64,000 nt of DNA from Podarcis filfolensis (lineage: Eukaryota), in NCBI GenBank assembly GCA_964270895.1, contig OZ185436.1; one strand, written 5' to 3'. How positions within the stretch are numbered: position 1 is the first letter of the stretch; each line of letters begins with the position of its first letter. Under the pieces are notes generated by a model. It saw only the letters and a program-made list of their open reading frames with translations, did no database searches and was not told where the DNA came from. Below, piece after piece: positions 1,964 through 60,756 of this stretch. Position numbers and translations under genes: made by a program.

Positions 1964-1979
1964 CTAGAGCAACAACACT

Positions 1980-24794: not shown

Positions 24795-24980
24795 AGCGGC
24801 TACACACTGATGCTGCAAGAGAAGCCCATCATAGGATGAGGAATAGAAAAAGAAGCGCAAGTTCCACTGCCAGACTTTGCCACTGGTTTCCAGGTTCCTT
24901 GCCACTTCTAAATAAATTATAACAACACTTCCTATAACTGCAAAATGTGTGATGCCTATGATAAGGATATAATCTTGGGG

Positions 24981-26472: not shown

Positions 26473-26670
26473 CAGGCTTTCCCCCACTCCGTGCTCTCCT
26501 CTGCCCGGCCCGCCAAGCTTTGTCCGCTCGATCGCCGGTGTCCGTACGAGCCACAATGGAGCCCTCGAAATCCTCTTCTGCTTCTCCTGCTCTTTCAAAC
26601 CGCGCGGTCGGCCCGCTCAGCCAATCAGGACGCGCAAAACTCCGCGGCTAATCACCTACCCGGGGCGGGG
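26473..26670 (-). promoter_or_regulatory. KIF20A promoter and non-coding exon 1 with CHR and CCAAT elements
   Basis: CpG island; minus-strand CCGCGCGG-TTTGAAA (CHR at 26593-26599); CCAAT at 26621-26625; GC box GGGGCGGGGC near 26661; candidate donors after 26473 (CTG|GTGAGA), 26385, 26348; no ATG in exon 1. Confidence 0.75.
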
Positions 26671-27251
26671 CCAGCGCCGAGCTGAACGCGAGGCTGTTTC
26701 TCATCCTGGCTCTTGTCGCATGTAGTTCAGCTTCAGTCTGAGAGGAGTGGAAGGAGGAACGAGCAGAGTTTTCTCTGGTCTGGTTCTTCTCCCTCTATTA
26801 AAACCCTTCTGGGCCACAAGATATGCCCCCTGCCACCATTCCAGTGCCAATTTTTGCCCCCACCCACCTCCAAATATCTCACAAAAAGTGTGGGGGGGGG
26901 GCTACCTTTGGCTGCAACCCCCTTACAACACAAACTCCAAGGAAAAGGAGAGGATTACTTCACAGCCAATCACAGTGGAAGGTGAGGGACCCTTCAGACA
27001 TCGGGAATTGCTCAGGCGAACTATATGAAACCTGCACCCCTGACTTCCCTCCAGTCACATTTTGATTCCTAATTCAGCTTCCAAAATACTGTTGCTTTTT
27101 TTTTTTTTTTTAAAGGAAGCTCAGAATCTCGGGCGCACTGCGGGCATGGGCCCTGATGCAATTGCTCCAACTGCAACATAGATAGTTTTGCCCAGATCCC
27201 TTACACCAGGAATGGGGAACATTTTTTAGTAAAAAACAACAACCCACATTA

Positions 27252-27487
27252 CAGTGGTACCTCGGGTTACATACGCTTCAGGTTACATACGCTTCAGGTT
27301 ACAGACTCTGCTAACCCAGAAATATTACCTCGGGTTAAGAACTTTGCTTCAGGATGAGAACAGAAATCATGCTCCAGCGGCGCGGCAGGAGGCCCCATTA
27401 GCTAAAGTGGTGCTTCAGGTTAAGAACAGTTTCAGGTTAAGAACAGACCTCCAGAACGAATTAAGTACTTAACCCGAGGTACCACTG
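27252..27487. mobile_element. Tc1/mariner (Tigger-like) MITE upstream of KIF20A
   Basis: Perfect TIRs CAGTGGTACCTCGGGTTA / TAACCCGAGGTACCACTG with TA on both flanks; opposite orientation to 3428. Confidence 0.9.
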
Positions 27488-28558
27488 TATATCAAGGGAA
27501 AACTTCCAGAAGCCATTTGCAAGTGGTGGATGGGGCTAGAGATGACAGTGGGTGGGCAAAAGGTGCTACTCTTACCTTTATATGATAGGCGGCATTCCAG
27601 CCACACAAAAGACAGACATTTCTACACTCATATGATGCCATCCTGGCAAGCTAGCTTAAGGACATACAAAAGCACTTGGGGAGGGATGGAGAAGTGTGGA
27701 TTAGGAGGGGATGTGGCATCTGAAGGATCCTTAGGGCCACAGAGAAGCTTGGAGGGCCACATTTGGCCCTGGGTCTGAGGTTCCCACCCCTGCCATACAT
27801 GGATTTTATCTGGTAGCAGCCCACCAGGTGCTGGGGCTCTGCAAAATAGTATATGCACCAAGCATTGCACACCCCACCTGCTGCTAGGGATGTTTCCTCT
27901 TAACCACATTTACCGTCAGTCACACACACACACAGTTTCTCCCCAGCCCAACTTTAGCTTCTGCTGCATTATGCTCAAACTCTGTGGGACAGAGAAGAGG
28001 CAGAGTCTAACAGTTTCCTGGTACTTTGCAAAGCCGCTGTCATTATATCTGGACTTGTCATAAAGGTGATCCTGTTTTTACAGGTATAATTGAAGCGAAG
28101 CGTGCTGTGGTATTTGTTTTCCCCTTTGCTTTCCTCGTGGTCATTATCTACTCCTCTCCTTTTATATCAGGCATTCACAAATAATTTATCATTATTGGTG
28201 GAGAACTCCCAATATCCTTTATGCCCTTCCCAAATTAGGCCAAGCCTAGTGATAACTACTTGGTAACTGGTAAAGGTGAGTACAATGGATGCAACTTCAG
28301 AGAGTAGTGTTCTGTTAGGGAGGCATGAACAGAATGAATTTGTGCCAGTGTTGAAACCAACAAAGCTACCTTGCTTGGGTACTAACAGTGGCATCATGTA
28401 GGGTTTTGGGGGTTTTTTGCCTCCAAAATAATGTTTGAAGATAACTGCATGCTCTTTCAGTTTTAGAATTTTCTAACAAGGAAGCCAACACAGATTTTTA
28501 AAAAATCTTTCGGAATCTAGAACAGAACTGTTCTGGAACGGTAATACACAACATAACA

Positions 28559-28564
28559 TTTATT
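28559..28564 (-). terminator. Candidate poly(A) signal for the BRD8 long (bromodomain-2) transcript
   Basis: Minus-strand AATAAA about 1.3 kb after the stop at 29840. Confidence 0.4.
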
Positions 28565-29086
28565 TTCTGGAAATGTACGTTCTACAGCCCCTTGTTGGTG
28601 CCTGCTACCAAAAACGGGGCTTAGCTTTGGGGGACAACAAGTCTTGCCTGTGCTATGGCTTGTAGGTTCTTTAACTTTCTTCTTCATCCATTAAACTTCA
28701 ACTGAGACTCCTGGGTGAGGACAAGACAGCACTGTTCCAGGAATAAATAACAGGAAAAAACATGGTATCTGTAGTCTAAAAACTGACTTTTCTAATACAT
28801 ATAAACCTGTTATGACTAATACTTTGGGACATATAATAGATAACAAAAGCTCTAAGGGAAGTGGAGGGGCATCAGACTGCTGAACTGTGGTTATCTCAAC
28901 AACTTTTCCGTAGAGCCAGACTGAAGGTAGCACGGTTGAAATCCAGCTTCTCGTCCCTGGACTAGCCTGATTCTTCTGGCTCCTCAACATCTATAAATTG
29001 AAAGAAAGACAGTAAATCTCTCAGTTCCCTAAGGATTTATCATGTTCCAGAATAGCCTGTATCTATGCCTACATAAACCTCATTAC

Positions 29087-29249
29087 GAAGGGCCACAGAA
29101 AGTACCAGGTTCAATCCCTGGCATTTCCAGGCAGGGCTGGGAGAGACCCCTGTCTAACATCTTGGAGGGCCACTGTCCATCACCATAGACAATGCTAAGC
29201 TAGACAGACCAATGGTCTGACTTGATATAAGGCAGTTTCCTATGTTCCT
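29087..29249 (+). mobile_element. tRNA-derived SINE, degenerate
   Basis: B-box-like GGTTCAATCCC and shared tail AGACAATGCTAAGCTAG...AAGGCAGYTTCCTATGTTCCT as in 31965 and 35944. Confidence 0.7.
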
Positions 29250-29300
29250 GCTTAGGGAGCCAAGTGAATTTTTAATCATCTATATGCCTTGCATATAGAA

Positions 29301-29645
29301 GGGACGCGGGTGGCGCTGTGGGTTAAAACACAGAGCCTAGGACTTGCCGATCAGAAGGTCGGCGGTTCGAATCCCTGTGACAGGGTGAGCTCCCATTGCT
29401 CAGTCCCAACTTCTGCCAACCTAGCAGTTCGAAAGCACATCAAAAGTGCCAGTAGATAAATAGGTACCATTCCAGTGGGAAGGTAAATGGCGTTTCCATG
29501 TGCTGCTCTGGTTTGCCAGAAGCAGCTTAGTCATGCTGGCCACATGCTGTATGCTGGCTCCCTTGGCCAATAAAACGAGATGAGCGCCGCAACCCCAGAG
29601 TCGGTCACGACTGGAACTAATGGTCAGGGGTCTCCTTTACCTTTA
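29301..29645 (+). mobile_element. Sauria SINE, near full length
   Basis: GGGACGCGGGTGGCGCTGTGGGTTAA head, GGTTCGAATCCC B box, TTTACCTTTA tail. Confidence 0.9.
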
Positions 29646-29839
29646 AATTCTACTCATTATTGTGAAATCTAAGGAAGAGGCTTTCACCTTGAGATGAATA
29701 GCACTCATGTTTGGGAGACACAAGCAGAGATGCCATACATCCTGTGAATGGTTGGGTTTCCACTCATTTGTTCCCTACAGGTATGGGAACATGGCAAAGG
29801 GGAGGCTGATGTGGTTGCTCCCCTTTGAATACAATCCTC

Positions 29840-32800
29840 TCACCTTCTCACAAAGCCCTGCATTTCTTCTGAGCACAGGAGTGCCTCGCCCAGCATCTGA
29901 AGCTGCTCCAGAACTTCTCGTTGCATCTCCAGAGCAATGCGATGTATATGGTGGTTGGAGTTATTGTACATGATGGCATTCTGGAACATCAGCATGAGAT
30001 CCCGCTGGAACTGCACCATATTCTGAATGCGGCCCTTGGAGAGGCTCCTCTTTATGGAGGAAAGATCGGCTGGCCTTCAGAAAGGAGGGAGAAGTAAGTT
30101 GCAATTGTCTGTCACCCTAGCCAAGTTGTTAAGAAAAAATTACATTGTCTCTCGGAGAAGGATTTGGGTGGTTATAGATTGGAAACTGGCAGAATTTTAA
30201 CTTGGTAGCCTAGATAGCTCTCAAAGGAAATATCCAATCCTTAGAGTAAGAATTTCTGTTCCTCCATCAGTGGATGGTGGCAGTTACTGGCTTGTGTTGT
30301 ACAGTGGATTTAATCTTCAAACATACTTTTCTTTGGTTGAAATCAGCCCCTTCGCTCAATTTGGATCAGGTCTATGATGATTCTGGGGGTGGGTTTAACC
30401 CTTCACATACCCATACTGCTTCTTAATACATAAATCACACACTAAAGCTGATATTATCTACAGAGTGGGTAGATAGGAAGATGGGTACAATACAGGCGAC
30501 TGTCTTTTCTCATCTAAATAATAGCCTCTGGGGGAGTGATTCATGTTAAGGGAATCTACCCCAGTACTAAAGTCCCAATCCCAATCCCATCCTCTACCTC
30601 ACTGCTTTTCAATCAATAATAATTATTGGGTGGGTAAGGGGAGGGAATGGGAGACTGACTCATGAACCTCATCAATCCCACCATTGCATCCAGGCAGGCT
30701 TCTCCTGATCCAGATGTTATGGAGAAATAGAGCTGAGTGTCATAAGTATACTGATGGCATCTGGCTCCAAAATGCCTAATGACTGCTTCCCAACAGCTTC
30801 ATATAGGTATTCAATGGCATAGGGGATAAAATAGTGCCTGGCAGCATCCCATAATTTAACCACCAAAGGGGCCAAAAAGTACTCTCTCAATGTAGGTAGG
30901 ACTGGAACCCCCCGTTTCTCATTCCATGGAGCCAGTCCAAGAGGCTATATGCACAATGGTATCAAACGCAGCTGAGAGGCAGAAAAGCAGGAACAAAGCT
31001 GCATTACCCTTGCCCTGCTCACTGTAAAGGTGGCCAAGGATGACTCGGTCCCATAGCCAAGCCTGAATCCAGATTGGAATGGGTTTAAATGCTCTGTGTC
31101 GTCCAAGAATGCTTGCAGCTGCCCTGCCACTACTCTCTCCACCACCAAGAAATTGGTAGCTGCAACTGGATGGTAGTTATTCCAGTCTGAAGGGCCCAGG
31201 GCTTCTTCAAGAGTGTTCACACCACCATGTCTTTCAAGGCAGCTGGAACCACCCCATCACACAATAAAATGTTCTCCATGCCTTGGACCCAAGGAATCAA
31301 ACCCCCTCTGGTAGATTTAAGAAGCTAGGAGGGACAGGGGTGAAGAGGGCATGTGGGCAGACGTATTGCCACCAGCATCTTATCCATATCAACTTGACTG
31401 CATAAGCTGAAACTGATCCCGTAACATTATCATAGACTCTGGCATTGAACAATTCGGCTGGAACTGCAACCATGGCAGTTGTTGTGACTTGTAGCCACTC
31501 CACAGCCTTATTCTCTGTACCAGCTCTCCCTCCACTTTCTCAGCTGACCTTTTCACCACATCTTTGTAACCAGGAGCCTGCTTCTCGGAAACGGGCTTCA
31601 GAAAGGGGCCGCTGTATCTAAGGGGGAGACAGAGATGAAGAGAGCTAAATAGGCTTCCCCATGTGCATTACACGACCCCTTGACTCACCACCGGACTTCA
31701 TGCCACACCCTTTTCTGTATCTCAGAATGACTGGTGGGGATGACAGTGATTGGCAGATGGAAGTCAATCAGCTAAGAAATCACAATATAATAAATAGAAA
31801 GGAAGGGTGAAATGCTCAGGGTAGAACCATGCACAGGTTTGTGCTTTACAGGGGGCAGCTCTGAATGCTGTGTATGCATAATGTCGGACCAAGAGAATCA
31901 GGCCAGGATGGGCTGAGAAAAAGGGACACATTCAGCCGTTGTTCCATCTTCCAATTCTAATTACGGGGAAGGGCTGTAGCTCAATGGAAGAACATCTGCT
32001 TTGGCTGCAAATGATTGCAGTTCAGTCTCCAGACAAGACTGAAAATGTCCCTAGTCTGAAACCTGGAGGATAGCTGCCAGTCAGAGTAGACAATGCTAAG
32101 CTAGAGGGACAAATGGTCTGATTTGGTATAAGGTGGCTTCCTACATTCCTAACCCTAATACATATAGGACACTCCATTTCCTCCGGGCTTCGGTCTTGGG
32201 ATCCCAGTGTCTTCCCCCATATTTTCACCAGTTCTCTCTGAGCTTGATCCACAACATTCTTCTGTTCGAGCTTTGACTCCCTCAGTATCCAACCCTGGTC
32301 TTTCCATGCAGGCTTTAAAGTCTTAGGTTTACTCTCACTGTATCAGTACTAAATTTTGGCACATTTCCTCTATTTATATATTTCCTCCTAAATTTCAATC
32401 CACCCACCCCTCACCTTACACACATGGTTCACCCTCTTAATAACCACCAGATACGGGCAGTCGCTCCTGTTTACCCAAATACACCTTAATAAATTTGATG
32501 CTGCTTGCCCAAAAAAACCCCAGGGTGATAATCTCAGGAGTGTATTGGATTTTAGGATCATGAAGCAAGTCTGATACGATTTCTGCTATTTAAAAAAAAT
32601 TAGCAGATGCAGTAAATGCAATAAGCAAGGTGCCTAGGTTACTGAATGTATAGATGCAACGCTACACCACTCCAAGAAATGAAGCAATTTGAAAGAGGAA
32701 AACTGCAGTGTCAGGAAGTGGGACAGCAGGAGATTTCAGTCTAGACCAGACTGTGCAAAAGGTTGCATCTCTTAAATTGGGGGGAGGAGAGGACCCTCAC

Positions 32801-35800
32801 AGGAAGTGGCATGCAGACACAGACAAATCGCAAGATGCTGTGTGACCTGCACTAGCTCTTGAATGGTTAGTATGAAGCAGCCATGAAGATGTGCTACTGT
32901 GGATGCAGCCTTTGTCCTCTTCGCCTCCATAAACCTTAATAACACACCTGTGGCCAGCCACCATCTTCCAGATGGACAACAAAGTTTTTTTGAAAAGCAA
33001 ATGCTGCTGGAGAGGGTCATCTTGGCTCAGCCGCATCCTATACAGATAAGAAACAGAACAGATTTATTCCCATCAGGAAAAAGAAATTGGTGGGATGAAA
33101 TGTGTTATTGGACCGGTGATGCAACTAAGGTTTGTTAGCCCCCGATGGAAAAAGAAATTTGTAAAACTTACCAATGAAAGTTAGTAAATGAAGGGGTTAA
33201 GGAACACAGAACTGTAAATTTCTAGAGAAGGCACAGCTAAGATACACCCCCTCACCTTCAAGGAGGAGGGAAGTATTGTTTGTTCCCTGCTCCTCTCTCC
33301 CTCTTCTTTTTGAACCATGCAACTGACCAGACACATGAGGCTGGCGCTCCCTGTCCAAACTCCATGCTTGAAGGTACCCTTTTTGTATGTTGTACTCTAT
33401 AGGTTTTTACCTGTGTTGTTTTTGCTGTAGCATTGATAGATGCGTGAGTGTGACCTTTACTTAAAATAAGTAAAGGTTTGTGCTCTATTAACTCTGAGAG
33501 TGGTAGAGACAGGGGAACACAATTAGTACCCAGTGCTTAATACTGAGACATTTAAAGGTCTAACATCCTATATTTGCCACGCTTTGCAAACACTGCATAT
33601 ATTTTAGTTTTAAACTCTGCTGAGGGCCCTTTTGACTACAGAGTGAGTCAGCCCCATGTTTTTTTAATTCAGGCAGTCAGCCGTTTTTTGTTTACTTTTG
33701 TAGTTTCCCCCACACATGGAATATCTGGATTAACTAGTATTCCCCAGTTATTTCCTAACAAAGAGTTCCCCGCGCCTCTTCTAGAGGGAGCTTTAGGCTG
33801 CAACCCTATATATAAGCTTAGCTGGGAGCCAGGCCCACATAACTCAGTGGGGTTTACTTCTGAGTAGACCTGTGCAGGATTGCATGGAGAGATGACTGGC
33901 TACACTTAAAGTACTAAGCCTGAAGAGTAGGCATGATGCCATTTCTGAGCTTTGTGCCACCATTACTCACAAAGGCAAAGAAGCTGTACTTGTGGTAGGA
34001 GAGCTCATCAAGGGTGTTCCATAGGGACTGGAGTCATCGTTGCTGTAACTCAGGTGGAAGTCACAATCTTTCCAGTCTTCAGCACGTTCTGCAGCCACTT
34101 CCTGGTGAACACAAAATAGGCATGAGCTGAATTGGCAAAGTAACAAATGGAATATCAAACTCAGGGCCAGATGCCCATGATGGAAGATACAAGGATTCTA
34201 ACTGGCTGGATCCATCTTTTCTCCACCCCACCTGAAAACGCAGCTAAGCCCTCCCAAGCAACTTGTTCTCACTTTTCCCCTTCCCACCAACAATCATGGC
34301 TAGCTCACAGATTTCATCTTTCCCTTGGTGCTTATCAACTTTCACTTCACTATGCTGCTCCTTTCCAGAGAATATGACCTCTATCCCAAAATGGAGAGAT
34401 GAGGCACAGAGACAGAGACCTAGTCCTAAAACTCGACTTGTGAGAGTTTCACCACTTACCTCCACGTTTTGTGGCACCCCATCCTTCAGCGTTCTCCAAC
34501 TGAAGGAAGTATCATTTGTAAGCTCTAATGAGTAGTCATCTTCATCTGTTTCTCCTGCACTTTCCACAAGGCTATGCAGCATCTTCTTTTCCAAATCCCC
34601 ATCAGGATTGTCATCTTGAATCTGAGAGTCTCCTGACTCCTCACACAGATCCTGTTGCTCTTCCATTCCTTCTGCTTCCCAGTTAATAACTGGGAGCCCT
34701 TCTGAGACCTGAAATGCCAACTTTCCCCTTCCCTGGGAAGTAGCTCTCTTTTTCAGAACCTGAAGCTGACTTCCTTTAGCCACTTCCTCCTCTTGGTGGG
34801 TCACAGATCCCTTTATGTCTCCTTCATGATCCAGCAATCCCCTTCCAGGCAGCTCCCCAGCACTGCAAAGTGCCTGTGGACCCTGGGCCAGGTATGTGCT
34901 GCCAATGCAAAGGGGCTCCATCAAATGTGTTACCTGGAAGAGAGGGTGACAGGCTAAACAGCTTAAGACCATTACAGAATTAGTGACATTACAGAACTAT
35001 ATGCAGATCTGTCCATTCAACACATCTTTTGTCCTAACGGGCATAGGATAGAGACGCAGCCAAAACACAGAATAACACTCCATGGGCATGTGAATAGAAG
35101 TGCATCTGGGCAAAGACACCCTTCCACTTTTGAATTAGAGGGCAGGCACCAACCCTTGTCAACACATTTATCCTGAACCTCTATCTCCAGGTACCTTTAC
35201 CCAACTGCATACAGAAATGGCCAGTCTGCCACGTGGACTGGGAACACTATTTTTTCAGCCAATTGACAAGGTCACCCACCACCACCTCCGCCTTTTCCTC
35301 AACTGCACCCACCAGCAGCCATACCTCTGACAGGAACCTCAAGATAGCATCCTGCTTGTACCTCCCAGCCTCTTCTTGGTCCCCTCTGCTGGCACCTTCC
35401 CATGCCAGAGGACCACTCGTTCCCAGCTGACTCTCCTCCTCTTGGCTGCTGCTCTCCTCGACCTCCTCCTCAGCAGTTTCTTCCCCCTTTCTCCAGCAGC
35501 CTAGTTCCAGGTCAAGATCTGAGCTGGAGCCTGGGGAGCCCTGGGGAGACTGGCAGCTGCTGCTCTTCTCAGACTCCGTGAAGAATTCTTCTTTGGACTC
35601 CAGCCAGGTCCACACGTGACCCATCTACAAGAGGTACACGAGATGGGAAGAGGGTTTGTCACTCGCTCACATGCTAGCTTCAGATCTGATCAGGTGTTCA
35701 AGCAGGTAGTAAAGGAGCCAAGTTCAAACCCTGACATATACAATCTATTGTGGTAATGCTCTCAGCTGTGACTTGAAAGAGAACTTTTACCAAAAATTAT

Positions 35801-38800
35801 CCCTAGCTTCTAATTGTCTATGTGGCACTGCACATCTGCCAAGTCCCACAGCAATCCAAATGGTAAGCCAGGAGTGGGTTGCTGAAGCCTTGGGTTATAT
35901 CACCATATTTGCTAGCAGTGGGGATTGGGAACAGGGCAACCCAGATGTGGCTCAATGGCAGAGCACCTGCTTTGCCTGCAGAAGGGACCAGGATCAAACC
36001 CTGCTATCTCCAAGTACGGGTAGGAATGTCCTTTGCCTGAAACCCTTAAGAGCCACTGCCAATCAACGCAGACTGTACTGATCTAGGTGGGCGAATTGTC
36101 TAGAATGGTACAAGGCAGCTTCCAATGTTCCTGCATAATAGGTAAAGGAGGAGAGGTGGATTTCTCTCAATGCAAGGCGAATAGAAAAGGCAGATCCTTT
36201 CTAAGAATTATAATCCATTGATAGCACAATTTTGCAAAAGAGTTGGAAGCCACTGCCTTATTACAACCCAGTGTGTCTAGAAGTCAAGATCTCAAAATTT
36301 TATCTAGGTTTAAAGGAGGAGATAAAGATGCTGTATGAGAATGCAGGTGAAAGTCATGGAAGCCTTCTGTTAACACCACCCTGGGGGAATTGTATTGCTT
36401 ATGCTGGGATCACTTAACTAGTTATTATACAGTTATTCTTTTGATTATCCCTGAAATATTCTTCAGGGTGGAGAAAATCAAGAAGTCGTTTTTGCTTACA
36501 AAACCCGAGGGTGTCTTAAAACATTGTGACGGTTTCTTTTTTTACTCCCATTGGTGACAATATAAATTTTAGTAGACATGTTTTGAAGCAACACATTGAA
36601 GCGTTTGCTGAGATATCATGGTTGAAAGAAGTGGTAGTGAAGCTGAGGTTGAGGAGCCCTGGGTGGGTCCCCAGGGCTCTATCCAACTCTCAGGACTCTC
36701 CCTCAGCCACTTCCCCTCCTCAGCCCACATCCCTCATGGGTTTTCTGTTCCTACTCAGGCACTGCTGTTTCCATCTGCCCCACCCAGCCTTTCCCAGACT
36801 GTGACTTTGAGAACAGCAGCAGCTAGGAAGAGATGATTTCAGGGTGGGTGGGTGTGGGTGTGGTTTTATAATTTGTGTGTGTGTTTCAATTTGATCCTTT
36901 TACATGGTTTTGTATGTTTTATGGTTTTCATGCATTGCAATTTGCTGTTATTTTTACTGATTATAGATTGGTAAATTCTTTATTGTGGTATGTGTGAACT
37001 GTTTAATTATTTGCCGTTGTTTAATTTTACTGTGTATTATTAGATCCTGATGGATTGTTGATTGTGGCTTTGTTTGATATAAGTTGTCTATTTTAAAGTT
37101 GTGATTTTTTATATTGGATCAGATTGTTATTATTAACGTTTATTATGTGTTGGAAGCCGCCCAGACTGTCGTAATATAAATAAAATATTATAATATTATT
37201 TTCCTGTGCCCTTTTGCTGGGTTAAAATGTGTCTTGCTTGCTTGTATGGAGGACAGGTGTACTGTAGGTGTATAGAAACATCCACACAGTTGTAATGTAG
37301 CCTACTGTACAAAGGTGAAAAATCACATCCATTTCTCTGAGCACGCTTGTCTCTGGCTGCAGCCAACAATGACATGTCGCTCCCAGAAGGTATGAACCAC
37401 AATGAAGGCCTCTGCACACCAGCTGGCTGCCCCTGTAAGACCTAAACAATCATAGTTTCAAGTCTTTGGCGTCTCCAGTTTGAAAAGTGGGCAAGGGAGA
37501 AAGAGTACTTAAGTAGCAGGGCTGGGAAGGGAAACCTATCCATGATATTGGATCAGGCATGGAGATCCTGTTGTTAGACTCCAACTTCTATCAAGTGCAG
37601 TCAGTATGACTAATAATCAGAGCTGACAGGAGTTGAAGTTCAACATCATCTGGAAAGCCACAGGCTCCCCATCCCTGACTTGCAGAGTCACTACCAATGA
37701 GCATAGCTGTGCACAGCACATTTAATGAGGGTGTGTTTGCAGGGTTTTTGCTTCCCCCCCTCAGGATAAATATTTATTGAATACATAATCATAAAGGACA
37801 TTGTTTGATAAATAAACTGAAGAAACTAAAATGTAACTTTTTTATTAACAAAAAATACCTAAGTTTTGCTGCCGTGATAATGAAATGTCATGACCTTTAA
37901 ACAGATGAGTTAAACCAAATTGACCAAAACAGATTATAGTTTCATCATCTTCCTGTCCTAGGAAGGTGGCAAGTGGTGCCTGGAGGGAGACAGAGCCATG
38001 AAAACAGACACAGGCAAAAGAAAAAGGCTGCAGCTTCTGCCTGCATCTGTAAGCAATGGTGGGATACTTAGCTCCAGCAGCAACAGTAAGGAAGGAGGAA
38101 ACTGCAGGTCCTTTCTAGGCTTTTTATTCTGTCTCTCTGTCTGCTTCCCTCCTCCCTACTTCTGCCTTAGTCTCTCCCCCCATAGCCGCTTCCCTGTGGG
38201 TTGTGTCACCTGAGGCAGCCAGGCTGCTGCTCCGTGCTCTCTCCTCCTTGCTATGACCTCATGTTTTGAAACATTACGGTGTGTCTGGGCACACATAGCA
38301 CACCTCTGCCAATGAAGAGACAGTAATGGACTACCACATGCCAGCAGAGGGCCATGGCCAACATTGATGTGACTATCTGGCACCCAGAGACAGGTAGAAA
38401 CTCATCTATCACAGAACTGGGTTTGATAGACTAGCTCGAACGCCTCCAGAAAGGAAAATCCAATTGTTTCCTTTTGCTCTTCAGCAATTGATCTCTGAAG
38501 AGCAGAGGCAACTATTTTTTCAGCACATGGGCTGGGAGGAGAGACTTCTTTTTATGATGGGGAGGAAGATGGGAGCTAGCAGACCTGTTTGAAAGTGCTT
38601 GGCAGGTCTGATCTAGCTGATGGATTTGTCATTCTGGACTGTGTAGTCAAAACATTGATTCACAGTATGTGTAGGTCTTTACAAACAAGTTTTTCTTAGA
38701 GAGGGTGGTAATGTAAATAAATCAATGCAGCCAGCACACCTTGCTCTACAGGATTCTCTACTACAGTTTATTATACACATTTACACTCCACAAATACAAA

Positions 38801-41800: not shown

Positions 41801-44800
41801 GGAATCTCGTCCACGCAGACTTTTTGCACTGATCCCAGACTCAGACGTCTGCATGATCAACTGTGTGGCTAGAAATTGCTGCAAGAAACCACATAATAGC
41901 TATTAAGGTTCTCAACATGAATGCAAGTTTAGTGGCTTGCTACAGAAACAATGGAGGTAACTTCAGTTTACTGGTTTGTTTCTAAGCCTGCATTCCTTTT
42001 GATTGATCTTAGGAATGGTAAATCATGCAGGGATGGTCAGACATCAGGTTTAACCAGTTTCTCTCTAAGAGGATCTTAAAAGCTAATGAGACAATAAAGA
42101 TGCCGCAAGGAGCAGGCATCTTCTCTAGTGTACTTAGTGCTTCCCATACAACATCAGGATAAGAACAGTGCCCCACTGAAAACTTCCGACTGTGGCTTTA
42201 CCTGAATCTGCTCCAAGACATCTCGCTGCATTTCCACAGCCATGTGGTATACATCATGGTCAGAGCTGTTGTACATGACAGCATTTTGGAACATCAGCAT
42301 GATATCACGTTGGAACTCTGCTGTGGTCCGGATTAGCCCATTCTCAATATTCTTCTTAATGGTTGATAAATCCATTGGCCTGTCAATAAAACACCAGACA
42401 AACGTTACCAAAGAAATTAAATTTATTAATACAATCTAAAAATATATTTAAAAATAACTAAACTAGCTGTTCTCCCCGCTTCTGCCAAGAATCTGATCAT
42501 TGTACCTGATCAACTTTATTAATGCTAGATTGAAGAGACTGTCCCAGGTATATGCTGGCAGTGTCTGAAATCTGCAGGCTGACTGACGTCCAGGACAGAT
42601 CTGTGACAGATGGCAACAACACTAAGGCAAAAACTGGTGACTCACCTCTGTACAATACTGTGGTAACCTGGAGCTATATCATCGGTCACGGGCTGCAAGA
42701 AGACATTGGCATACCTGTGCAACAAAAAATGTGCAAGAGAGTGACACAGGACTAGCTACTGAAAGTTTGAGTACATACAAGGTCAGTGGAAGTAACACAA
42801 CTTCCACATGCAGAAGTACAGAACTGTTTCTCAACATGCTCTCCACTCATTTGCTCAATATGCTATAGCCAAGAGAATTCTACACCTGAAAATCCACCTT
42901 CTATGACTGGAGATGCACAAAGAGGAAACTACATACCAGTGCTATATATGCATATTTTTGTACCAGTTCCATCAAACTGGCAAAGCGTAGTTGGGACTTG
43001 AGAAATATGCACATAGAGCAGTAGCAGATATGCAGTCAGATGGATGTACTGTGAACTGCACCACACAAAGATATGACACCCACGGAAAATAGAAGATAGG
43101 CTACAGAATTCTGCTGCAGATGCCCATGTGGTAAGATCACTCAATACCTTTTCAGTTTTCTTCCATAGCCATCAGTACCTGGCATGTTTTGAGGGTTTAT
43201 GTTTCAATTTGACAGCTTAGTTTTTCAAAATTTCATGGCGTTTGCCAGGTTTTGTGCTAAAGGCTCGCATGGAAATGCTTAGAGTTGCAACATTTAATTG
43301 ATTAAAAGTTTTAAAATATATTAATCTAAGCAATTAATCAACTAAAAAGATGCCCAATTAATCAGGCAGATTTTTAAAAAATTAAGTGCAAGTACTTCTA
43401 AGGACTGCAGATGGCAAACACCCTATTAAGAAGAGGCATTCCCCTTTCTCTCACACACAAGGAAATGCCTCTTCTAGAATGAATGTTAGTACAACAGACA
43501 CATACAGCAGTCTCTCCTCTTCCTACATCGGGGGTAGGGAACTGCCAGGTCATTTCTCCCAAACCATGGCCACCCACACACCCATCAGCTGACATCACTG
43601 GTGACATCAGCTGATGAGTGGGAGGGCAGGGTCTAATCCTGCATTGGCTACGCATTCCCAGCAGGGAACTAGTCCATGCAGTCAAGGCAGCAGTTTAATC
43701 CCAAGTTACTTCAAAGACTTTAGTATAGCTCCTGCACTCCCATTTGTGGCTCCAGAGACTCAAACAGGAACGTGGGCGCTGTTTTAAGGCCTTCTGCAAG
43801 TCTATCTCCACCCTTTTTAAGTCCCCGATCTTGGAGGCTTGAATGGGAACTGCAGAGAGACTTGGAAAAGGGTTTTTGAGTCTCCTCCTGCTCCCATTTT
43901 AAGCCTCTGCAATCAGTAGCTGAAAAAGGGGGAGCACAGGGAGACTCGCAAAGCACAAGGGATTTTGACAGGTGGATGGCCCTGCCAACCTGTCAAATTT
44001 GCCCTATAAGGCAGATTCTGGTAAAAGACTTGGCCCATGGAGCCAAAAAGGTTCCCCATTCCTGTTCTACATGCTTGGACACTGGATGCAAGTTGATTTA
44101 CCTGTGATTGGCTGCTGCTCTCCAAACTAACATAATAGCCTTTTTCCAGATCTTCTGGGCCTGAATAGCCTCCTGATCCTCACTGCAAACAGAGCTGAAG
44201 AGGAAAAGGCATCTATTAGAAAAGGACACCCAAAGGCTCCTAAAGCAAAGCAAATAACCACAATCTCCAACATCCATCCCCTCCTACTTCAAATTTATCT
44301 AAGTTAACAAAAAAAGAAAAAAAGAAACGTTTGCTGGTCTCCTAAGCAAGCAAAAGTCTAACCTTGAGGCTTCTCCATACAGCCAAGAAGTTGTACAAGA
44401 AGAAGAAGAAGACTATAACATTGCATGGGTCTCAGCTAATTCACACTACATACCACTGTACAAAGGGACAAAATTAGTCTCAACTTTCAGCAGGCTAGTT
44501 GCATGTTCTGGGCTATCTAGTGAGTAGTTGTAGGTTCACCAATACTCACAACTGTGAGGAGGCGGGGCTGCTGGGAATGGAATCAGCCAAAGTGTGAGAC
44601 TGCAAAGGCGCATTATGGATACTGAAGCCATCATCACTCTCACTCACAGGGGGCTCATTGTCCATTTCAGAGAGGTATCCCTCACCCTGATCTTCCTCTT
44701 TGGGCTCTTCCAGACTGGCAGCCTCACTGGCACCATCCTCCTCATCCTCTTCACCCTTAGATACAAGATTAAGATTCCAGCAAATCAAGTAGCACAACTA

Positions 44801-50800: not shown

Positions 50801-51766
50801 CTGGCTCCGCTGAGATGCTCCAGCTGCTCCCATGTAGCATTTAAGCAAGGAGCCAGCAGCATGGATAAAGTCAATCAAGTAAATAAAGTCAATCAAGCAC
50901 AGAGGCAAGGAAAATCCAAAATAAAAAACTCCCTCATTCTCATCCAAAGAAATAACACTCTGCTTCTCATCCATGGCTAGAAATTCAGGTTAGCTCGGCT
51001 TAATTTGTTAGAAATGCCAGACAGGAAAGATCAGCTCAAAAAGGAGAAAACTGTAGAGCTTTCCTTGGAAACACAAGGCAGATTTTTTTCTAAGCCCACC
51101 TCCCCAATATAATCAATGCTAAAAACATAAAATAAAACCTTATGTATTAAAAAGTCACAGGAGAGAAGGAAAAAATAACCAAGGTGTATATGAAGCAAAC
51201 AAAGACTACATTGCATAGATGGTCACACAAATCCCAGATGACCTTACTCATATGAAGGGATCCCCATATGGCTGCAGATCCTCCCGTTCCACATAGTGTC
51301 CATTCCACCTGCCCATGCACACTCACCAATGGTGAGAGAAGACAGACTTTATGAGACAGATGGGAAAGCTGCGGCCCTCTGGAGATTATTGGACTAGAAT
51401 GCCCATCAGCCCAAACCCAATTGGCCATGTGCCTGGGGCTGATGTGGGTTGGAGTCCAACATGTGGAGGGCTACAGTTTCTTCACACACCCCTGCTCTTT
51501 GGGGATCCCGCCACATGCAGGCAGTGAACAAGCTCTAAATATATTAAGAGAGCAAAACAAAATACATTATGGCTGCCATCCCATACACACTTACCTGGGT
51601 GCATGGGATTGCAGTGCAAAACATCCAAATTATTGTGTAATTGTGTGAGGTTTCCTAAAGTTCTTGCACTAAATCATGTCTAATTTGACATTAATGTTGT
51701 AAACCATCTAAAAGTCTTTTTTGTTCTGGTAAATGATATATAATTTCTGTTAAATAAAATAAATAG

Positions 51767-51811
<45 letters not shown>

Positions 51812-54800: not shown

Positions 54801-57800
54801 AAATTTGTATGGGAAATTGCAAGAAGCCTACCTTCCCAAACATTGTACATTGTACAATTTATAGGGACTGAAACATAAATAAAAAGAAGAAATGATTCAG
54901 TCACAAGACACAATAATATATATGAAAAAGTGTTTGGCTTCTAAAGCTGAGCAACTTTTGCAGATTTAAACATCCTACTGCTCTTTCCCGGGGAATGATG
55001 TCGAACTGACCCCCAAGTAAAGCACAGGTTACAAAAATATGAGAAAGACATCTACTCCCCAAACCAGAATGCCTGAGCTAATCCAGAATCCACTGCATTT
55101 CAAACTGGCCTCATTGCTGTCATTTGATGGCAATGGGCCTGATTGCTCCAGCAGCATTCTGTCTGCCCCCCACCTGGCCAGCATGAGCTATGGGTCTGGA
55201 TGGAGCTAGATGAGATTGTGGCTGTGTCCTTCTTTCGTGTTTTGTGACTACTCAGCCAGGGTTTGGATTGTTCTGCCAGTGAATTATCTTTCTTTGTAAA
55301 CAAATCACTTAGCTTAGGGTAAAGTATGCAAGTTACTATAATTTCTGGGAGCCAGACTTAAAAAGAAAGATGGTCAGGAAGCAGCGTTTCAGGTACTTTC
55401 GTATGCTGTGTTCAAACTGTCATTCTTCTTCAGTTCTCAAATAGTCTATAACACAGTAGTTTACCATTACACAGTATCTTCCTTGCAATGTGAAGTCCTG
55501 CCCTGTCCCACCCCACTCAAAGAGATGGTTTGGCCTTTGAACTCACTTTGGGGTCTCTGTGGTCTCCAGAAGCTCAGAATATTGTGATGCACAATGCTAA
55601 AAAAAAAGATAATAAAAGTGCATACAGATTTCAGAAGATAAATCACAACAGACAGCACTAAGAATCTGAGTTGAGACAAAAACTTGGGGTAGTTTATATA
55701 ACACACATTCCACATATTAAAGCTGTTTCCAGATATGTGGGCTAGGAAATATACTTTCCTGGCAAATGATTTAAAACATGTTTTACGCATTTAACGTGCG
55801 ATAGATCCTTACAGGGAGTCCCCTGAACAGGTATTCCCCATAGGTGAAATGAAAGCCTATTATGATGTGAAATTTAAGCACCCTACCTTTTGGGAAAACC
55901 AATCAGGTGGGCGGCCTGGCTCTGCAAAGGGTTTGATGGCTCTGCTGACAGACACCCTAGAGAATAAGAAGAAAGTTTCAAGATCTTCCCTCCTTTGCTG
56001 GGCAAAATATAGTGGGGAAGGTTTGGTCACCAGTTGATTGGACTGGGGAAACTTTGACCCACAGACAATACAGTGGTACCTCAGGTTAAGTACTTAATTC
56101 ATTCTGGAGGTCTGTTCTTAACCTGAAACTGTTCTTAACCAGAAGCACCACTTTAGCTAATGGGGCCTCTCGCTGCGCCGCCGTGTTTTGAGAAACCCAT
56201 CTCCCACATCTGGATTTTGTTTAAAGAAACCCCAGCATCAAGTGGGTGGTTAGAAACAGTCAAAGGTCAAAGGCCTATAGCACGTCTTATCCCCTCCCCT
56301 TTCTCTAGGAATGTGTGTATGTGCAGTGGTATAAAGCCAAGGCTGGATTCAGCACCATTTGCACGAGTGTGAGCTTTTATCATCTTGGTGGATGTTACAT
56401 GTTGTATGGTAAAGTATAGCATGGTGAGATAGCATGGTAAAGTGCTAGTGGATCTGTCTGCAAACTTGGATCATTACTAGGTTTATCTCTAAGATCAGAG
56501 AACTGCTTTGTAGTTGATAAGTTCATGATGTAGCAGCATCTCTTAAAGTTTTTGTAAGTAGTGTGCCTATGCTTGTCTTGTGCTGTGAGACAATAAACAC
56601 ATTACACTTTGAACTGAACTGTGTGAGAAAGGAGTTTTCTTAACAGGGAACTCTAGAAAATACTGACTACTGGAAGGTAAGAAGACTTTGAAGTTCTTCT
56701 GTACGACTCTGCTGGAGCTGTGCATACTCTGCTCACTGCACTGGTCAAAGTGTGGTATAATATCAACAACATATGGTGGGCCCAATATAACAGGTTATGG
56801 GCCAACTGACTTACGAGTCTAACCACCTGTAGCCCATATTTGGAGCTAGAAAGAGTGGTTGACTTTGCTGCTGTGCAGCTAAGATACCACCACCACCCTG
56901 CCTTGTAGGTTTTGTACTTACAGTTCCATGACTGGAAGGATGATGCTAAATACACTTGCAAGAGGATAACAGAACACTGGCAAGCAGAAACATGAAATCC
57001 TCCTGAACTATTAACAGCTTGCCAGAAAACTACCCCGAGTTCAGCTCTGAGACCCTTAGAGATATTCACACGGTCCCCAAAAACAGCTTCCCCCATCTTG
57101 AACCTCTATATAAAATCACACCTTCATCCTTCTAAATCAGTTTTTCATTGGAAGCCCAAATTATCCAGTTGTCAGTATTACTATTTGGTGTTAACAATCA
57201 TCTCAACTACTACTACTACATATGAATAATGACACAGTGCAGATGTAGATACCTGCTCACTTTTCTATTAAAGCCCATTTCCTAAACCATTTCTCCCCTT
57301 TTTTCACCAGCGTATATTGTTGACTATATATTTAGAATTATATTTTGAAATTATTTGACACAAGATTATTTTAGCATAGTTGACTATGTAATATGCAGCT
57401 GGGTTATATGTCCAAGCTCATTGGCTAATGTCTAGAAAATCCCTTCTCAGTAGGACTTTGGTATGCTTCCTAGTCTTGCAATCCTACAATTCTGTTTTTA
57501 ACAATTTTTCCAACACATGCAAAGTTAGGATCACAAAGGGCATTCAATTACTTCTTGTGTTTGGAATAAGAGCCATCACAAATCAATTGAGGGTTCTTTA
57601 TGACTTATGTAATACAGTTAAACAATATACATTCAAAGTGTTGGTGTTGACCTTTAAAGCCCTAAACGGCCTTGGCCCAGTTTACCTGAAGGAGCGTCTC
57701 CACCTCCTTCTGGTGGTTCCCTCATTGCAAGAATTAAAGCTACAGGGAACCCGGCAGAGGGCCTTCTCGGTAGTGGCGCCCTCCCTGTGAAACACCCTCC

Positions 57801-58842
57801 CATCAGATGTCAAAGAGTGCTACTTGACAACTACCTGACATTCAGAAGACATCTAAAGGCAGCCCTGTTCAGGGAAGTTTTTAATGTGTGACATTTTAAT
57901 GTATTTTTAATCTTTGTTGGAAGCTGCCCAGAGTGGCTGGGGAAACCCAGCCAGAAGGGCGGGGTACAAATAATAAATTATTATTATTAAACTATGTTAC
58001 AAGGCATAGCAGGAACTGTATTTAGCAACAGTTTTTATGTAGCCAACAGTTATATCCGTTTCTTACCAGTTTTGGTCTCCACTCCGCATGACTGAAGAAG
58101 CCAAACAAAGTTTTTCCCGGATAGACCATGGCTCTGTAGGCCCAGCACTCAGCAACTTGTGCTCTGATGTGGAAAAAGATAAACATTACAGTGTTGCAAC
58201 ATGCCCACACAGTTAAAAAGAACCCTCAAACTAAAATTAAATCTATCTCAATCCATGCTGCTTTTAAAAGTTTGGTTTTCAAGCCCCTACACCCTCCATG
58301 CCCCACCACAAACAGCCACACCAAAAGTCAATTCAATGAAAAGTCTACTGGTAACAACTGAGTGGCAGAGAATATATGTTGCATGCAAAAAGTCACAGGG
58401 TCAATTTCCTGTTAACCTCAGGAAACATTCCCATCTGAAACCCTGAAGAGGTGCCTTCATTTAGTGGTAGGGAAGATTCCTTTCTGAAGCCCTGGAAAGT
58501 CACTGTCAGTCAGTATGAACAATAAATAAGCCGTTTGTCTGGCTAAGCATAAGGCCTTTTACTACCTCCTATGCCCGTTATTCCCGGGTACCTCAGCTAA
58601 GGAGAAAACTGACCTGTCATCGGAGGCCTTTTAGTCAAGCCACCTCCCAACCAACCCTTCTTAAAGTCATGTTAAAAGTTGCCTGACACCTGACACAACA
58701 AACGAAGCTTCGCTCAACCAAGCAACGGGCATCCTTCTCTAGTTTTTTTTTTATGGCGGGGCCAACCCTAGCTCCCCTCACCGCGCCACGTCCCTCCTTC
58801 CCCAAAGAAAGACCCCCACTCACTACCCGTCCCCGCCGCCAT
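29840..58842 (-). CDS. BRD8: BRD8 long isoform with two bromodomains; about 1354 aa if spliced 40445 to 35624
   Basis: Short-isoform exons through 40445-40489, then 35325-35624, 34460-34933, 33971-34101, 32948-33037, 31549-31617, 29840-30074 (1299 nt, GT-AG, in frame). MGHVWTWLES, LRFLSE|VTHLMEPLCI, LSQDDPLQQHLLFKKTLL and PFLKPVSEKQAPGYKDVVKR match the human long-isoform C-terminus; the 474-nt exon is less certain. Confidence 0.8.
30700..31220 (-). mobile_element. L2 LINE ORF2 reverse-transcriptase fragment, decayed
   Basis: Minus-strand LNPFQSGFRLGYGTESSL, SAAFDTIVH-like motif and HQYTYDTQLYFS (degenerate YADD) with frameshifts. Confidence 0.8.
31965..32150 (+). mobile_element. tRNA-derived SINE
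   Basis: A-box GGGCTGTAGCTCAATGG head; same tail as 29087 and 35944. Confidence 0.75.
35944..36132 (+). mobile_element. tRNA-derived SINE
   Basis: GTGGCTCAATGGCAGAGC A box; AAGGCAGCTTCCAATGTTCCT tail. Confidence 0.7.
37841..37846 (-). terminator. Probable poly(A) signal of the BRD8 short isoform (second AATAAA at 37773-37778)
   Basis: AATAAA about 1.24 kb after the stop at 39084 with U-rich downstream sequence on the minus strand. Confidence 0.6.
39084..58842 (-). CDS. BRD8: Bromodomain-containing protein 8 (NuA4/TIP60 subunit), short p120-type isoform; 22 exons, 941 aa
   Basis: Exons 58824-58842, 58067-58163, 55887-55956, 55547-55596, 54478-54600, 54290-54370, 53791-53855, 53150-53286, 52581-52796, 50547-50691, 48367-48576, 47649-47929, 46890-47324, 46110-46203, 45943-45989, 44550-44755, 44102-44194, 42646-42714, 42202-42379, 41774-41878, 40445-40489, 39084-39143; sum 2826 nt in frame. 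GPTEPWSIREKLCLASSVMRSGDQNW, bromodomain YANVFLQPVTDDIAPGY...PMDLSTIKKNIENG...AVMYNSSDH, end DGGTRGRRCAIEADMKMKK*. Confidence 0.96.
41007..41038. repeat. (TTGG)8 microsatellite
   Basis: Direct reading. Confidence 0.95.
43529..44064. mobile_element. Older hAT MITE in a BRD8 intron
   Basis: Ends CGGGGGTAGGGAAC / GTTCCCCATTCCTG; TSD TCCTACAT vs TTCTACAT (7 of 8); internal TTTGACAGGT inverted repeat shared with 10588-10918. Confidence 0.65.
50030..50137. mobile_element. Penelope-like element terminal-repeat remnant with inverted partial copy and degenerate hammerhead motif
   Basis: TTCCAGTCGCACCTTAGAGACCAACTAAGTTTGTTCTT...CACACTTCTTCAGATA resembles the reptile Penelope terminus (recall); inverted arms 50058-50088 and 50106-50137. 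Confidence 0.75.
51771..51836. repeat. (TG)19-TA-(CA)13 self-complementary compound microsatellite
   Basis: Direct reading. Confidence 0.95.
56071..56184. mobile_element. Truncated Tc1/mariner (Tigger-like) MITE in BRD8 intron 2
   Basis: TA-CAGTGGTACCTC left TIR and internal match to 27252-27487; right end missing. Confidence 0.8.
57631..57988 (+). mobile_element. L2-clade LINE 3' fragment
   Basis: FKVLVLTFKALNGLGPVYLKERL ORF2 end, shared 3' UTR and (TTA)n tail. Confidence 0.88.
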
Positions 58843-59093
58843 CTTCCCCAAGACGCCAACAAGCGCGATGCTTGCTGGGAAACCTGCTCCGAGGAGGAAG
58901 GAGAGGGCGGCATTTATTCCTCAAAGTCGCTTTTCTACTGGATGATGGCAGAGCTGGCCGACCAATGGGGTGACCGGAAACAAGGTCTTTCCCTCCCTTT
59001 GAGCTCTATGGTTGCCTTCCCAGAGTTCCTTGCTCTGGGAGGCTCAGGAGCGGAAGTGGCTGCACGTGGGTCCGCGTTCTTTCGGCGGCAAAG
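58843..59093. promoter_or_regulatory. BRD8/NHP2 bidirectional CpG-island promoter
   Basis: Divergent ATGs (58842 minus, 59094 plus) separated by 251 bp; CCAAT 58962-58966, ETS/GABP CGGAAGT 59051-59057, E-box CACGTG 59063-59068. Confidence 0.85.
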
Positions 59094-60756
59094 ATGGGCA
59101 AAGCCAAGCACCAGGAGTCGAGGGAAGAGCCGGAGCCCGAGGCGACCCCGGAGAAGTCGTACCACGAGCTGGTGGAGAACGTGAACGCCATCGCGCGGCC
59201 TCTGGCCTCCCGCAAGTTGACGCGCAAGTTGTACAAGTGCATCAAGAAAGGTGCGCGTGCAGGACGGGGAGGGGAGGGGAGGGGAAGGAGGGCGGTCCGG
59301 CTTTCGCGGGCGGTGGGGGCTCCGTCCAACAACCCTTGCTGGAAACTCCCGTTTGACTTGCAGCATCGAAGCAGAAGCAGATCCGGCGTGGGGTGAAAGA
59401 GGTCCAGAAATTCATCAACAAAGGCGAGAAGGGGTAAGAACTCCGCGCCGTTGCGACGCGATGTGCCTTCTTTCTCTCTCCGTGCCGCTGCCTGACGCTA
59501 GCAGTTCAGATCTTGAATTCGGAGCCAGTCTTGTTCGCTAGGCCTGGTCCCTACTCTCGCCGTGTTAGGAAATCCTCTTTCTGTCTGTCTGTCTGTCTAT
59601 CTATCTATCGGAGAGAGATATAGACACGCAGTTATGTGTTGTTTAGACACACAAAGCTTTGAATCAGTAGATGACATTTTCTGAGATGTTCCGGGTCGTA
59701 AGCTTTCAAATAATCCTCAGCTAGTTTATAATCCTGTGATTCTGTTGGTGCAAGAGACAAAGGGACTGAAGGGACTGCTTTTAGTGCAGTCATTGCCAAA
59801 CTGGTGCCTTCCAGCTATTTTGGCTACAGCTCAGGGCCCCAGCCAGCACAGCTGAAGGGCACCTTATTGGCGAAGGCTGTGCTAATACAAGGGTGGGGAA
59901 GCTTTATATTCCATCTCCTCTTAGTCACAGCTAGCATAGCTAATTTTCAGGGATTATCAGATTTGTAACATTTGAAGGCCTTCATCCTTGAAGGCATCAT
60001 CACCAGAGAAACAATCTGGTTGTGTGTGAGAATGAGTAAACCTGTATTACAATATCAAATATTTGGAAAGATTCATAATATATCTGTTTTAATATATCTG
60101 TTTTGTTGTCTTCTCTACTTGCATTGCTCTGGTCTTATTTTTGTTGCTGATGCTGCATTGTCTGTCTCTCTTAGGATCACAGTTCTTGCAGGAGACACAC
60201 TTCCTATTGATGTTTATTGCCACATTCCCATTATGTGTGAAGACAGGAGCCTTCCATATGTCTACATCCCTTCCAAAACGGTAATGTAGGGTGGGGAAGT
60301 AGAAGAAAGGGATTCTCTCTTTCTGTGGATCTAGAGTGGAAACTGTATGTAGAGTTGGAAATGACCAGGATTCTAACATCGTTTTGTTTCCATGCTACTA
60401 TTAAAATATGGCTTCCATTTCTTGTAGAATTTTTATTCTTCACCATAGACCTGCATCCTGATAAGGAACAGAAATCTTGGTTATTCTAGAAGAGCAGTTT
60501 CACGCAGCTGGCATTTATATAATTTCTCCATGTGAATTGGTACATGGTCCGTTTGCTGCTTAAAGTAAAAAAGGTAAACTTGTATGTGAATTAGGAAACT
60601 GAATGCTGCTTTCCTATTTTTTTCTTTCAGGACTTGGGAGCAGCTGCAGGTTCAAAGCGACCAACGTGTGTGATCATGATCAAGCCCCATGAGGAATATC
60701 AGGAAGCCTATGATGAGTGTATGGAAGAGGTGGAGGCTCTTCCCCTCCCTCTGTGA
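59094..60756 (+). CDS. NHP2: H/ACA snoRNP and telomerase subunit NHP2 (L7Ae family); 4 exons, 152 aa
   Basis: Exons 59094-59250, 59364-59433, 60175-60280, 60631-60756; sum 459 nt. IARPLASRKLTRKLYKCIKKA, QIRRGVKEVQKFINKGEKG, LAGDTLPIDVYCHIPIMCED, DLGAAAGSKRPTCV. Confidence 0.98.

Follow-up and report, generated by a model that had tools for sequence, protein, structure and literature searches.

A probable in-place inversion of BRD8 on the lineage to squamates exchanged its head-to-head promoter partner

With which gene does BRD8 share its promoter, and how did the answer come to differ between a lizard and human? The question is raised by a 64,000-nt stretch of contig OZ185436.1 from the lizard Podarcis filfolensis (hereafter the window; free of N). 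A preliminary description of it, made from the sequence alone, had placed BRD8 head-to-head with NHP2 instead of with its human partner KIF20A, and had attributed the change to an inversion with one breakpoint in or next to a tiny bidirectional promoter. Comparison with other tetrapods supports an inversion and adds a direction to it, namely from the KIF20A promoter, which carries a CHR (cell cycle genes homology region), to the ETS/E-box promoter of NHP2. The best explanation of the whole is that BRD8 was inverted in place on the lineage to squamates, which we regard as very probable.

BRD8 and NHP2 share a short promoter in squamates

The order given by the preliminary description, CDC23(+), KIF20A(–), BRD8(–), NHP2(+), was borne out, with all genes identified and their coordinates read (Table 1). 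So was the spacing of 251 bp between the BRD8 and NHP2 start codons, the A of which is at 58842 and 59094, respectively. The two genes lie on opposite strands and diverge in the window as well as in Anolis carolinensis, Gekko japonicus and Vipera latastei, the squamate assemblies used for comparison. The gap between the start codons amounts to 251 bases in the window, 208 in Anolis, 247 in Gekko and 277 in Vipera, and is thus below 1 kb throughout. Judging by this layout, the transcription start sites of both BRD8 and NHP2 must be expected to fall within the 251-base span. The region around it (58700–59400) has the composition of a CpG island, with a GC content of 0.605 and a CpG observed/expected ratio of 0.81, compared with 0.15–0.17 in nearby non-promoter DNA.

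A motif scan of the shared promoter placed TTCCCAGC at 58874 (minus strand) on the BRD8 side, and a CCAAT box (58962), an ETS site (CGGAAG, 59051) and an E-box (CACGTG, 59063) on the NHP2 side. Alligator, swan and the window all have the paired ETS and E-box sites immediately upstream of the NHP2 ATG; Gekko retains the E-box, and Anolis the ETS site, with CGCGTG replacing the E-box. This persistence near NHP2 across species argues that the NHP2 promoter stayed with NHP2. No canonical CHR (TTTGAA or TTTAAA) was found on either strand of 58800–59100, the BRD8 promoter region.

The gene models of Anolis contain a curiosity at the same place: the annotated start of BRD8 isoform X1 (1344 amino acids) is a CATG that doubles as the NHP2 start codon (L004:10000–10003; L010:10001–10211), and the X1 model would carry coding sequence through the entire shared promoter. 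As the conserved BRD8 start lies ~210 bases further in, X1 looks like an over-extended gene model.

The squamate arrangement is derived

The unflipped state was compared in alligator, pheasant, Mute swan (a 5-kb contig) and Xenopus laevis, and for human through two papers rather than human sequence. With NHP2 drawn pointing right, KIF20A and BRD8 both point left in the window and in Anolis (L004, L010), where the coding start of KIF20A, on the strand of BRD8, lies 9.2 kb past the 3′ end of BRD8. BRD8 also points left in Gekko (L005) and Vipera (L009), and in these two species as in Anolis NHP2 is followed by RMND5B, pointing left. Alligator has KIF20A pointing left, BRD8 and NHP2 pointing right, and then a Fez1-domain gene and B4GALT7 (L007: KIF20A ATG at 9629 (–), BRD8 ATG at 10001 (+), end of the second bromodomain module at 38162, NHP2 start at 38623). 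The same three orientations occur in pheasant (L011: KIF20A (–) 1092–9569, BRD8 (+) 10001–32693, NHP2 (+) from 33868) and Xenopus (L008), and the swan contig (L006) holds the tandem part only, with the BRD8 3′ exon and NHP2 both pointing right. Wherever it is visible, BRD8 lies between KIF20A and NHP2, the two genes that flank it in Xenopus, alligator, pheasant, Anolis and the window; the strand of BRD8 is the sole difference.

For human, the gene order at 5q31.2 is NME5, BRD8, KIF20A, CDC23, and in a variant table the coordinates fall from BRD8 codon 635 to codon 972 and rise from KIF20A codon 44 to codon 594 (PMC2642994). Human BRD8 is thereby assigned to the minus strand and KIF20A, which has the higher coordinates, to the plus strand; the two genes are hence divergent. 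B4GALT7, N4BP3, RMND5B and NHP2 are listed together in one 5q35.3 deletion (PMC3909616). The human arrangement that the preliminary description had given, i.e. BRD8 head-to-head with KIF20A at 5q31 and NHP2 beside RMND5B at 5q35, therefore holds (PMC2642994, PMC3909616). The lizard locus has in common with the human and mouse KIF20A/BRD8 pair (5q31.2 in human) the two genes themselves, the CDC23/KIF20A tail-to-tail neighbourhood and a CHR-type KIF20A promoter; in contrast, BRD8 is reversed in the lizard, so that its 3′ end rather than its start faces the KIF20A promoter.

Since BRD8 is unflipped in Xenopus laevis, alligator and pheasant, and human likewise has the divergent pair, the squamate state is derived; synteny, which the preliminary description had named as the means of polarising the change, gives it a direction. 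On this sequence comparison, KIF20A was probably the ancestral promoter partner of BRD8 in tetrapods. NHP2 already adjoined BRD8 on its downstream side, as it does in Xenopus, alligator and birds, and its position at 5q35.3 in human reflects a separate, mammal-side break between the BRD8 3′ end and NHP2; the human block of NHP2, RMND5B, N4BP3 and B4GALT7 is intact.

The flipped state is present in four squamate lineages, the early-branching geckos among them. Most simply read, BRD8 alone would have been inverted once, as a segment of ~30 kb between unchanged neighbours. This would date to roughly 280–200 million years ago, later than the separation of lepidosaurs from the archosaur line and earlier than the divergence of living squamates. 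Standard split dates underlie this estimate.

Breakpoints and course of the inversion

The start codons of KIF20A and BRD8 are 371 bases apart in alligator. Between them, in the direction of the BRD8 ATG, follow one another a CHR (reading TTTGAA on the strand of KIF20A), a pair of CCAAT boxes in steps of 27–28 bases, a GC box and a pair of TTCCCGGC motifs. Window positions 26593–26635, comprising the CHR and a CCAAT box, align with alligator L007 9808–9850 in the same orientation (82% over 44 bases), and positions 58817–58849, containing BRD8 exon 1, align with 10026–9994 in the opposite orientation. Stretches that are ~150 bases apart in alligator are thus 32 kb apart and flipped relative to each other in the window, which puts the first break inside the shared KIF20A/BRD8 promoter.

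On the KIF20A side of this break, the module of CHR, CCAAT and GC boxes remains with its gene at conserved spacing. In the window it comprises the CHR (TTTGAA, minus strand, 26594–26599), a CCAAT box at 26621 and a GC box at 26663, with a degenerate second CCAAT-like element in between (near 26649). The CpG observed/expected ratio of this promoter is 0.96, and it is a CpG island like that of BRD8 and NHP2. The CHR sits close to the putative KIF20A start, on the KIF20A strand and 11 bases beyond position 26583, where a contig of 2285 letters ends; this contig comes from a related fourth species and from a run guessed to be RNA, and its end fits what would be expected for KIF20A exon 1. Spacing between CHR and CCAAT is regular, at 27 bases in the window, alligator and pheasant and 26 in Xenopus. 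By sequence, the KIF20A promoter is thus a candidate for the late cell-cycle type (targets of DREAM or MMB-FOXM1), and would be predicted to bind LIN54/MuvB and to be active in G2/M. In Xenopus laevis, the KIF20A CHR is accompanied by three CCAAT boxes at steps of 26–29 bases (L008:3869–3956). As to the gene itself, the KIF20A ATG sits in the second exon, and the lizard start codon is ~1.8 kb from the promoter (24794–26583), compared with only 180–255 bases from the CHR in alligator and pheasant.

On the BRD8 side, a TTCCC(A/G)GC motif ~50 bases upstream of the ATG is found in both lizard and alligator; squamate and archosaur sequences upstream of BRD8 can be aligned at the motif level only. 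Together with the KIF20A module, this motif may narrow the first break further, as far as such short motifs can be relied on.

The second break would lie within the ~460 bases that hold the BRD8 stop codon, polyadenylation signal and NHP2 ATG in alligator, i.e. between the BRD8 3′ end and NHP2. Of the preliminary description's claim about breakpoints, the tiny size of the target stands; the restriction to one breakpoint does not, as both breaks map to tiny intergenic stretches. Arrangements and polarity can be read directly from the compared loci, and breakpoint positions are resolved to ~100–450 bases.

In the window, the first junction would fall in the interval where promoter DNA formerly on the KIF20A side adjoins what used to be the 3′ flank of BRD8; this interval contains a high-copy repeat (27250–27490). 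On the BRD8 side it is bounded by two blocks, 28505–28564 and 28972–29020, that are kept in order just past the BRD8 stop codon in Anolis. The BRD8 stop codon and the promoter of KIF20A are ~3.2 kb apart in the window and ~3.7 kb in Anolis, with repeat insertions, and the CpG observed/expected ratio of 27500–29200 drops to 0.17. A second high-copy repeat, at about 29300–29645, lies within the probable BRD8 3′ untranslated region (UTR). Both repeats are short, SINE-like (short interspersed element) and of very high copy number, with summed contig depths in the millions, and are present in Podarcis filfolensis and its relatives; further copies of the one at 27250–27490 occur at 3427–3657, 16056–16269 and 56068–56181.

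We infer the following course of events. The ancestral tetrapod order would have been KIF20A pointing left and BRD8 and NHP2 pointing right, which makes KIF20A and BRD8 a divergent pair; a few hundred bases lie between the start codons of this pair in the archosaurs examined, and the pair is divergent in human too. One break would have separated the CHR/CCAAT/GC-box module of KIF20A from the core promoter of BRD8, and the other the polyadenylation site of BRD8 from the CCAAT/ETS/E-box promoter of NHP2. The ~30-kb segment released by the two would have held BRD8 only, together with at least ~55 bases of its own upstream DNA, and would have rejoined in reverse. The outcome is a new bidirectional promoter, a CpG island, from which BRD8 and NHP2 start back-to-back, with KIF20A retaining its CHR promoter and now facing the BRD8 3′ end across a gap later filled with repeats. 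The coding regions and core promoter motifs of KIF20A, BRD8 and NHP2 remain intact. Between the two junction intervals, inverted-repeat matches were at chance level (best E values 0.25–0.99); none would be expected to survive for so long.

Alternative explanations

That the orientation of BRD8 in the window is an error of assembly has one circumstance in its favour, i.e. that the two high-copy repeats separate KIF20A from BRD8 and are unbridged by short-read contigs. Contigs from public runs of Podarcis filfolensis and two related species, considered over 25800–30300, cover 25800–27273 (one related species only) as well as 27467–29129 and 29645–30300 (all three), and halt at the repeats, neither bridging nor contradicting the KIF20A–BRD8 junction. 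However, the unique pieces flanking each repeat are found in contigs of three species, and a chromosome-level assembly of Anolis has both junctions in the order of the window, the two loci being colinear from the last BRD8 exon through the two 3′ UTR blocks and the promoter module of KIF20A to its ATG exon. The BRD8/NHP2 junction, moreover, recurs in three other independently assembled squamate genomes (Anolis, Gekko and Vipera; 208–277 bases). Misassembly, named by the preliminary description as what might undo its proposal, is thereby excluded as the explanation, and we accord it practically no probability. A real change of order could also have come about by duplication of BRD8 in inverted orientation beside itself and subsequent loss of the original copy, a route that yields the same end state and, after >200 million years, would be indistinguishable from a simple flip, and for which there is no specific support. 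Yet tblastn searches with 15 BRD8 proteins recovered one set of exons, the sole second match being an internal one between the bromodomains; 26.7–29.8 kb and 58.8–59.1 kb contained no relics of BRD8 exons; and the route takes more steps than an inversion with two breaks. We therefore consider duplication and loss improbable. Less credible still is the possibility that squamates retain the ancestral order and that KIF20A and BRD8 came to be head-to-head elsewhere, for which no supporting evidence was found and which needs independent identical flips in amphibians, archosaurs and mammals.

Several points nevertheless count against the inversion of BRD8 in place as set out above. In Podarcis filfolensis itself, the KIF20A–BRD8 junction rests on the given assembly and its match to Anolis. 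Across ~280 million years, homology of motifs says little about exactly where a break lay, GC and CCAAT boxes being common. The comparison contains no tuatara or turtle locus, tuatara NHP2 being known only from UniRef and from no contig; the event is therefore dated no more closely than after lepidosaurs and archosaurs had split and before the squamate crown. Finally, in Xenopus ~6 kb separate the CHR/CCAAT module of KIF20A from the start of BRD8, and 2.9 kb separate it from the start codon of KIF20A itself. With the genes divergent at this distance and lacking a tight promoter, the tight shared promoter may be an amniote rather than a tetrapod feature.

Consequences for BRD8 regulation

Did the flip change how BRD8 is regulated? 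The preliminary description had predicted that BRD8 is cell-cycle regulated in mammals and growth- or housekeeping-regulated in this reptile. Such a switch is reasonable but not established, and the mammalian literature is mixed. BRD8 is among 701 human genes co-expressed in S/G2-M in a curated list (PMC6788831), and the DREAM-binding site of mouse Kif20a is functional in a reporter assay (PMC10581385). In a genome-wide study of CHR elements, however, only one gene was a late cell-cycle gene in each head-to-head pair whose two starts both had a CHR within 200 bases, and in no case did the CHR co-regulate the partners (PMC4176359). The ancestral KIF20A/BRD8 promoter resembles these pairs in having a CHR followed by CCAAT boxes at steps of ~27 bases, within ~200 bases of both genes; it differs in that the squamate flip naturally removed the CHR from beside BRD8.

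Against this background, the flip may have had no regulatory effect at all, BRD8 being driven by its own core promoter whichever way it points and being a housekeeping gene everywhere, a proposition on which we are evenly divided. The CHR survey speaks for it, as does the upstream DNA, including the conserved motif, that BRD8 would have carried along. The human S/G2-M list speaks against it, and so does the short distance to NHP2: the new head-to-head gap is still only 208–277 bases in four squamate lineages, whereas the tail-to-head gap on the other side grew. This difference hints at constraint on the new shared promoter, and is suggestive only. The opposite view, that the flip rewired BRD8 in all squamates, with loss of the S/G2-M coupling that it has in mammals by way of the promoter in common with KIF20A, and gain of co-regulation with NHP2 through the ETS and E-box sites (growth control of the MYC type), is tentative and on present evidence rather unlikely.

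Known parallels and significance

Bidirectional gene pairs are stable, with displacement of one partner affecting <1% of pairs among mammals; in one such case, that of cow CYB5R4, a 43-Mb inversion made the new pairing (PMC2688522). The squamate locus shares with cow CYB5R4 an inversion breakpoint at a promoter that makes a new head-to-head pair. It differs in that a piece of only ~30 kb with a single gene was turned, in that both breakpoints are in promoter-sized gaps, and in that an old protein-coding pair was dissolved as a new one formed; the resulting state, moreover, is old and common to a whole reptile order. The BRD8 case is thus a lineage-specific micro-inversion that swapped the partners of a bidirectional promoter, an event of a known but rare kind. 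A literature search of incomplete coverage found no paper on a BRD8/NHP2 pairing or a BRD8 inversion.

The interest of the locus lies in one small inversion having dissolved one pair and made another, with all three promoters surviving and the outcome kept across lizards and snakes. The same three genes are available in two wirings in good genomes, which allows a direct test of how much expression stems from a shared promoter. The functions of the partners differ, KIF20A acting in cell division and NHP2 in ribosomes and telomerase. The comparison would also test whether the cell-cycle CHR element acts in one direction only; should the rewiring be true, squamates would represent a natural experiment, ~200 million years old, on two-way action of a CHR promoter. 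In addition, the BRD8 flip is a simple shared marker of squamates, and possibly of all lepidosaurs. Practical stakes are modest, and the evidence concerns arrangement, not altered function.

Gene models and features of the locus

Genes were identified from single exons searched one at a time rather than from a joined spliced model. For KIF20A, the motor-domain exon matches KIF20A chains of solved structures (E = 5e-22), and exon 1 of NHP2 matches H/ACA ribonucleoprotein subunit 2 (E = 3.5e-11). In the same search of solved structures, the N-terminal exon of BRD8 had no match and its bromodomain exon matched only other bromodomain proteins; BRD8 was therefore named through protein searches, in which a central BRD8 exon retrieved proteins publicly named BRD8. 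By tblastn, Lacerta BRD8 aligned in order with 22 pieces of the window at a mean identity of 89%, and Podarcis BRD8 aligned at 91%; among the lizards compared, the window is closest to lacertids. The first BRD8 exon consists of the ATG and 16 more coding bases, followed by GTGAGT, and is conserved from Xenopus to squamates. At the other end of the gene, a signal scan detected polyadenylation signals on the minus strand at 29271–29276 and 28559–28564, and a low-depth contig of RNA type terminates at 28549.

Table 1. Features of the window (positions in the 64,000-nt stretch; a point marks features listed without strand).
Feature	Position	Strand	Basis
CDC23 coding sequence	2229–11300	+	Start and end read from the sequence; tetratricopeptide repeat exon matches human CDC23 chains, E = 1e-30
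KIF20A coding sequence	13755–24794	–	Kinesin Pfam hits; start and stop read
KIF20A first exon (5′ UTR), minimum extent	26473–26583	–	End of 2285-letter contig, putative RNA run
KIF20A core promoter	26594–26673	–	Motif scan; alligator alignment
Proposed first inversion junction interval	26675–28500	.	Bounded by conserved promoter module and BRD8 3′ UTR blocks common with Anolis
Probable BRD8 3′ UTR (putative extent)	28549–29839	–	Polyadenylation signals, Anolis conservation, contig end
BRD8 coding sequence	29840–58842	–	tblastn exon map with Lacerta BRD8; bromodomain Pfam hits
BRD8 second bromodomain module	29840–35630	–	Within BRD8 coding region
BRD8 bromodomain Pfam hits, two exons	42157–42435; 29843–30076	–	Pfam
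BRD8 exon 2	58066–58163	–	Reading of exons 1 and 2 agrees with Lacerta BRD8 N-terminus
BRD8 exon 1, coding part	58824–58842	–	Motif kept from Xenopus to squamates
BRD8/NHP2 bidirectional promoter, 251 bases, with proposed second inversion junction	58843–59093	.	Sequence, motifs, squamate alignment
NHP2 coding sequence	59094–60756	+	Four exons; tblastn with Anolis, alligator and Protobothrops NHP2
NHP2 exons	59094–59249, 59363–59434, 60176–60280, 60631–60756	+	Reptile NHP2 proteins mapped

Models of BRD8 differ among the public annotations. The part of BRD8 with the second bromodomain is a separate annotated gene in alligator (394 amino acids, L007:33227–38162), and separate gene models exist for it in Vipera (at least 249 amino acids, L009:39807–42212) and swan (177 amino acids, L006:191–2890); the BRD8 models of Anolis and pheasant include the second bromodomain. 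The best match to NHP2, an ‘NHP2-like’ protein of Lacerta agilis (152 amino acids), was dropped from the synteny comparison, as it represents an intronless copy inside a protein kinase C gene. This gene of 459 bases (L001:10001–10459) is probably a retrocopy, with an exon-1 region 91% identical to the NHP2 of the window.

Further out, a Fez1-domain (N4BP3-like) gene follows directly after NHP2 in alligator and pheasant (L002:14496–17197; L011:36794–39298). RMND5B, which intervenes in human and adjoins NHP2 in squamates, is uncalled between these two genes in alligator and pheasant. On the opposite side, CDC23 and KIF20A are tail-to-tail in the window, as in human. In pheasant, a sideroflexin-family gene instead of CDC23 lies at the KIF20A 3′ end (L011:1–9569), and the CDC23/KIF20A pairing is thus not universal.

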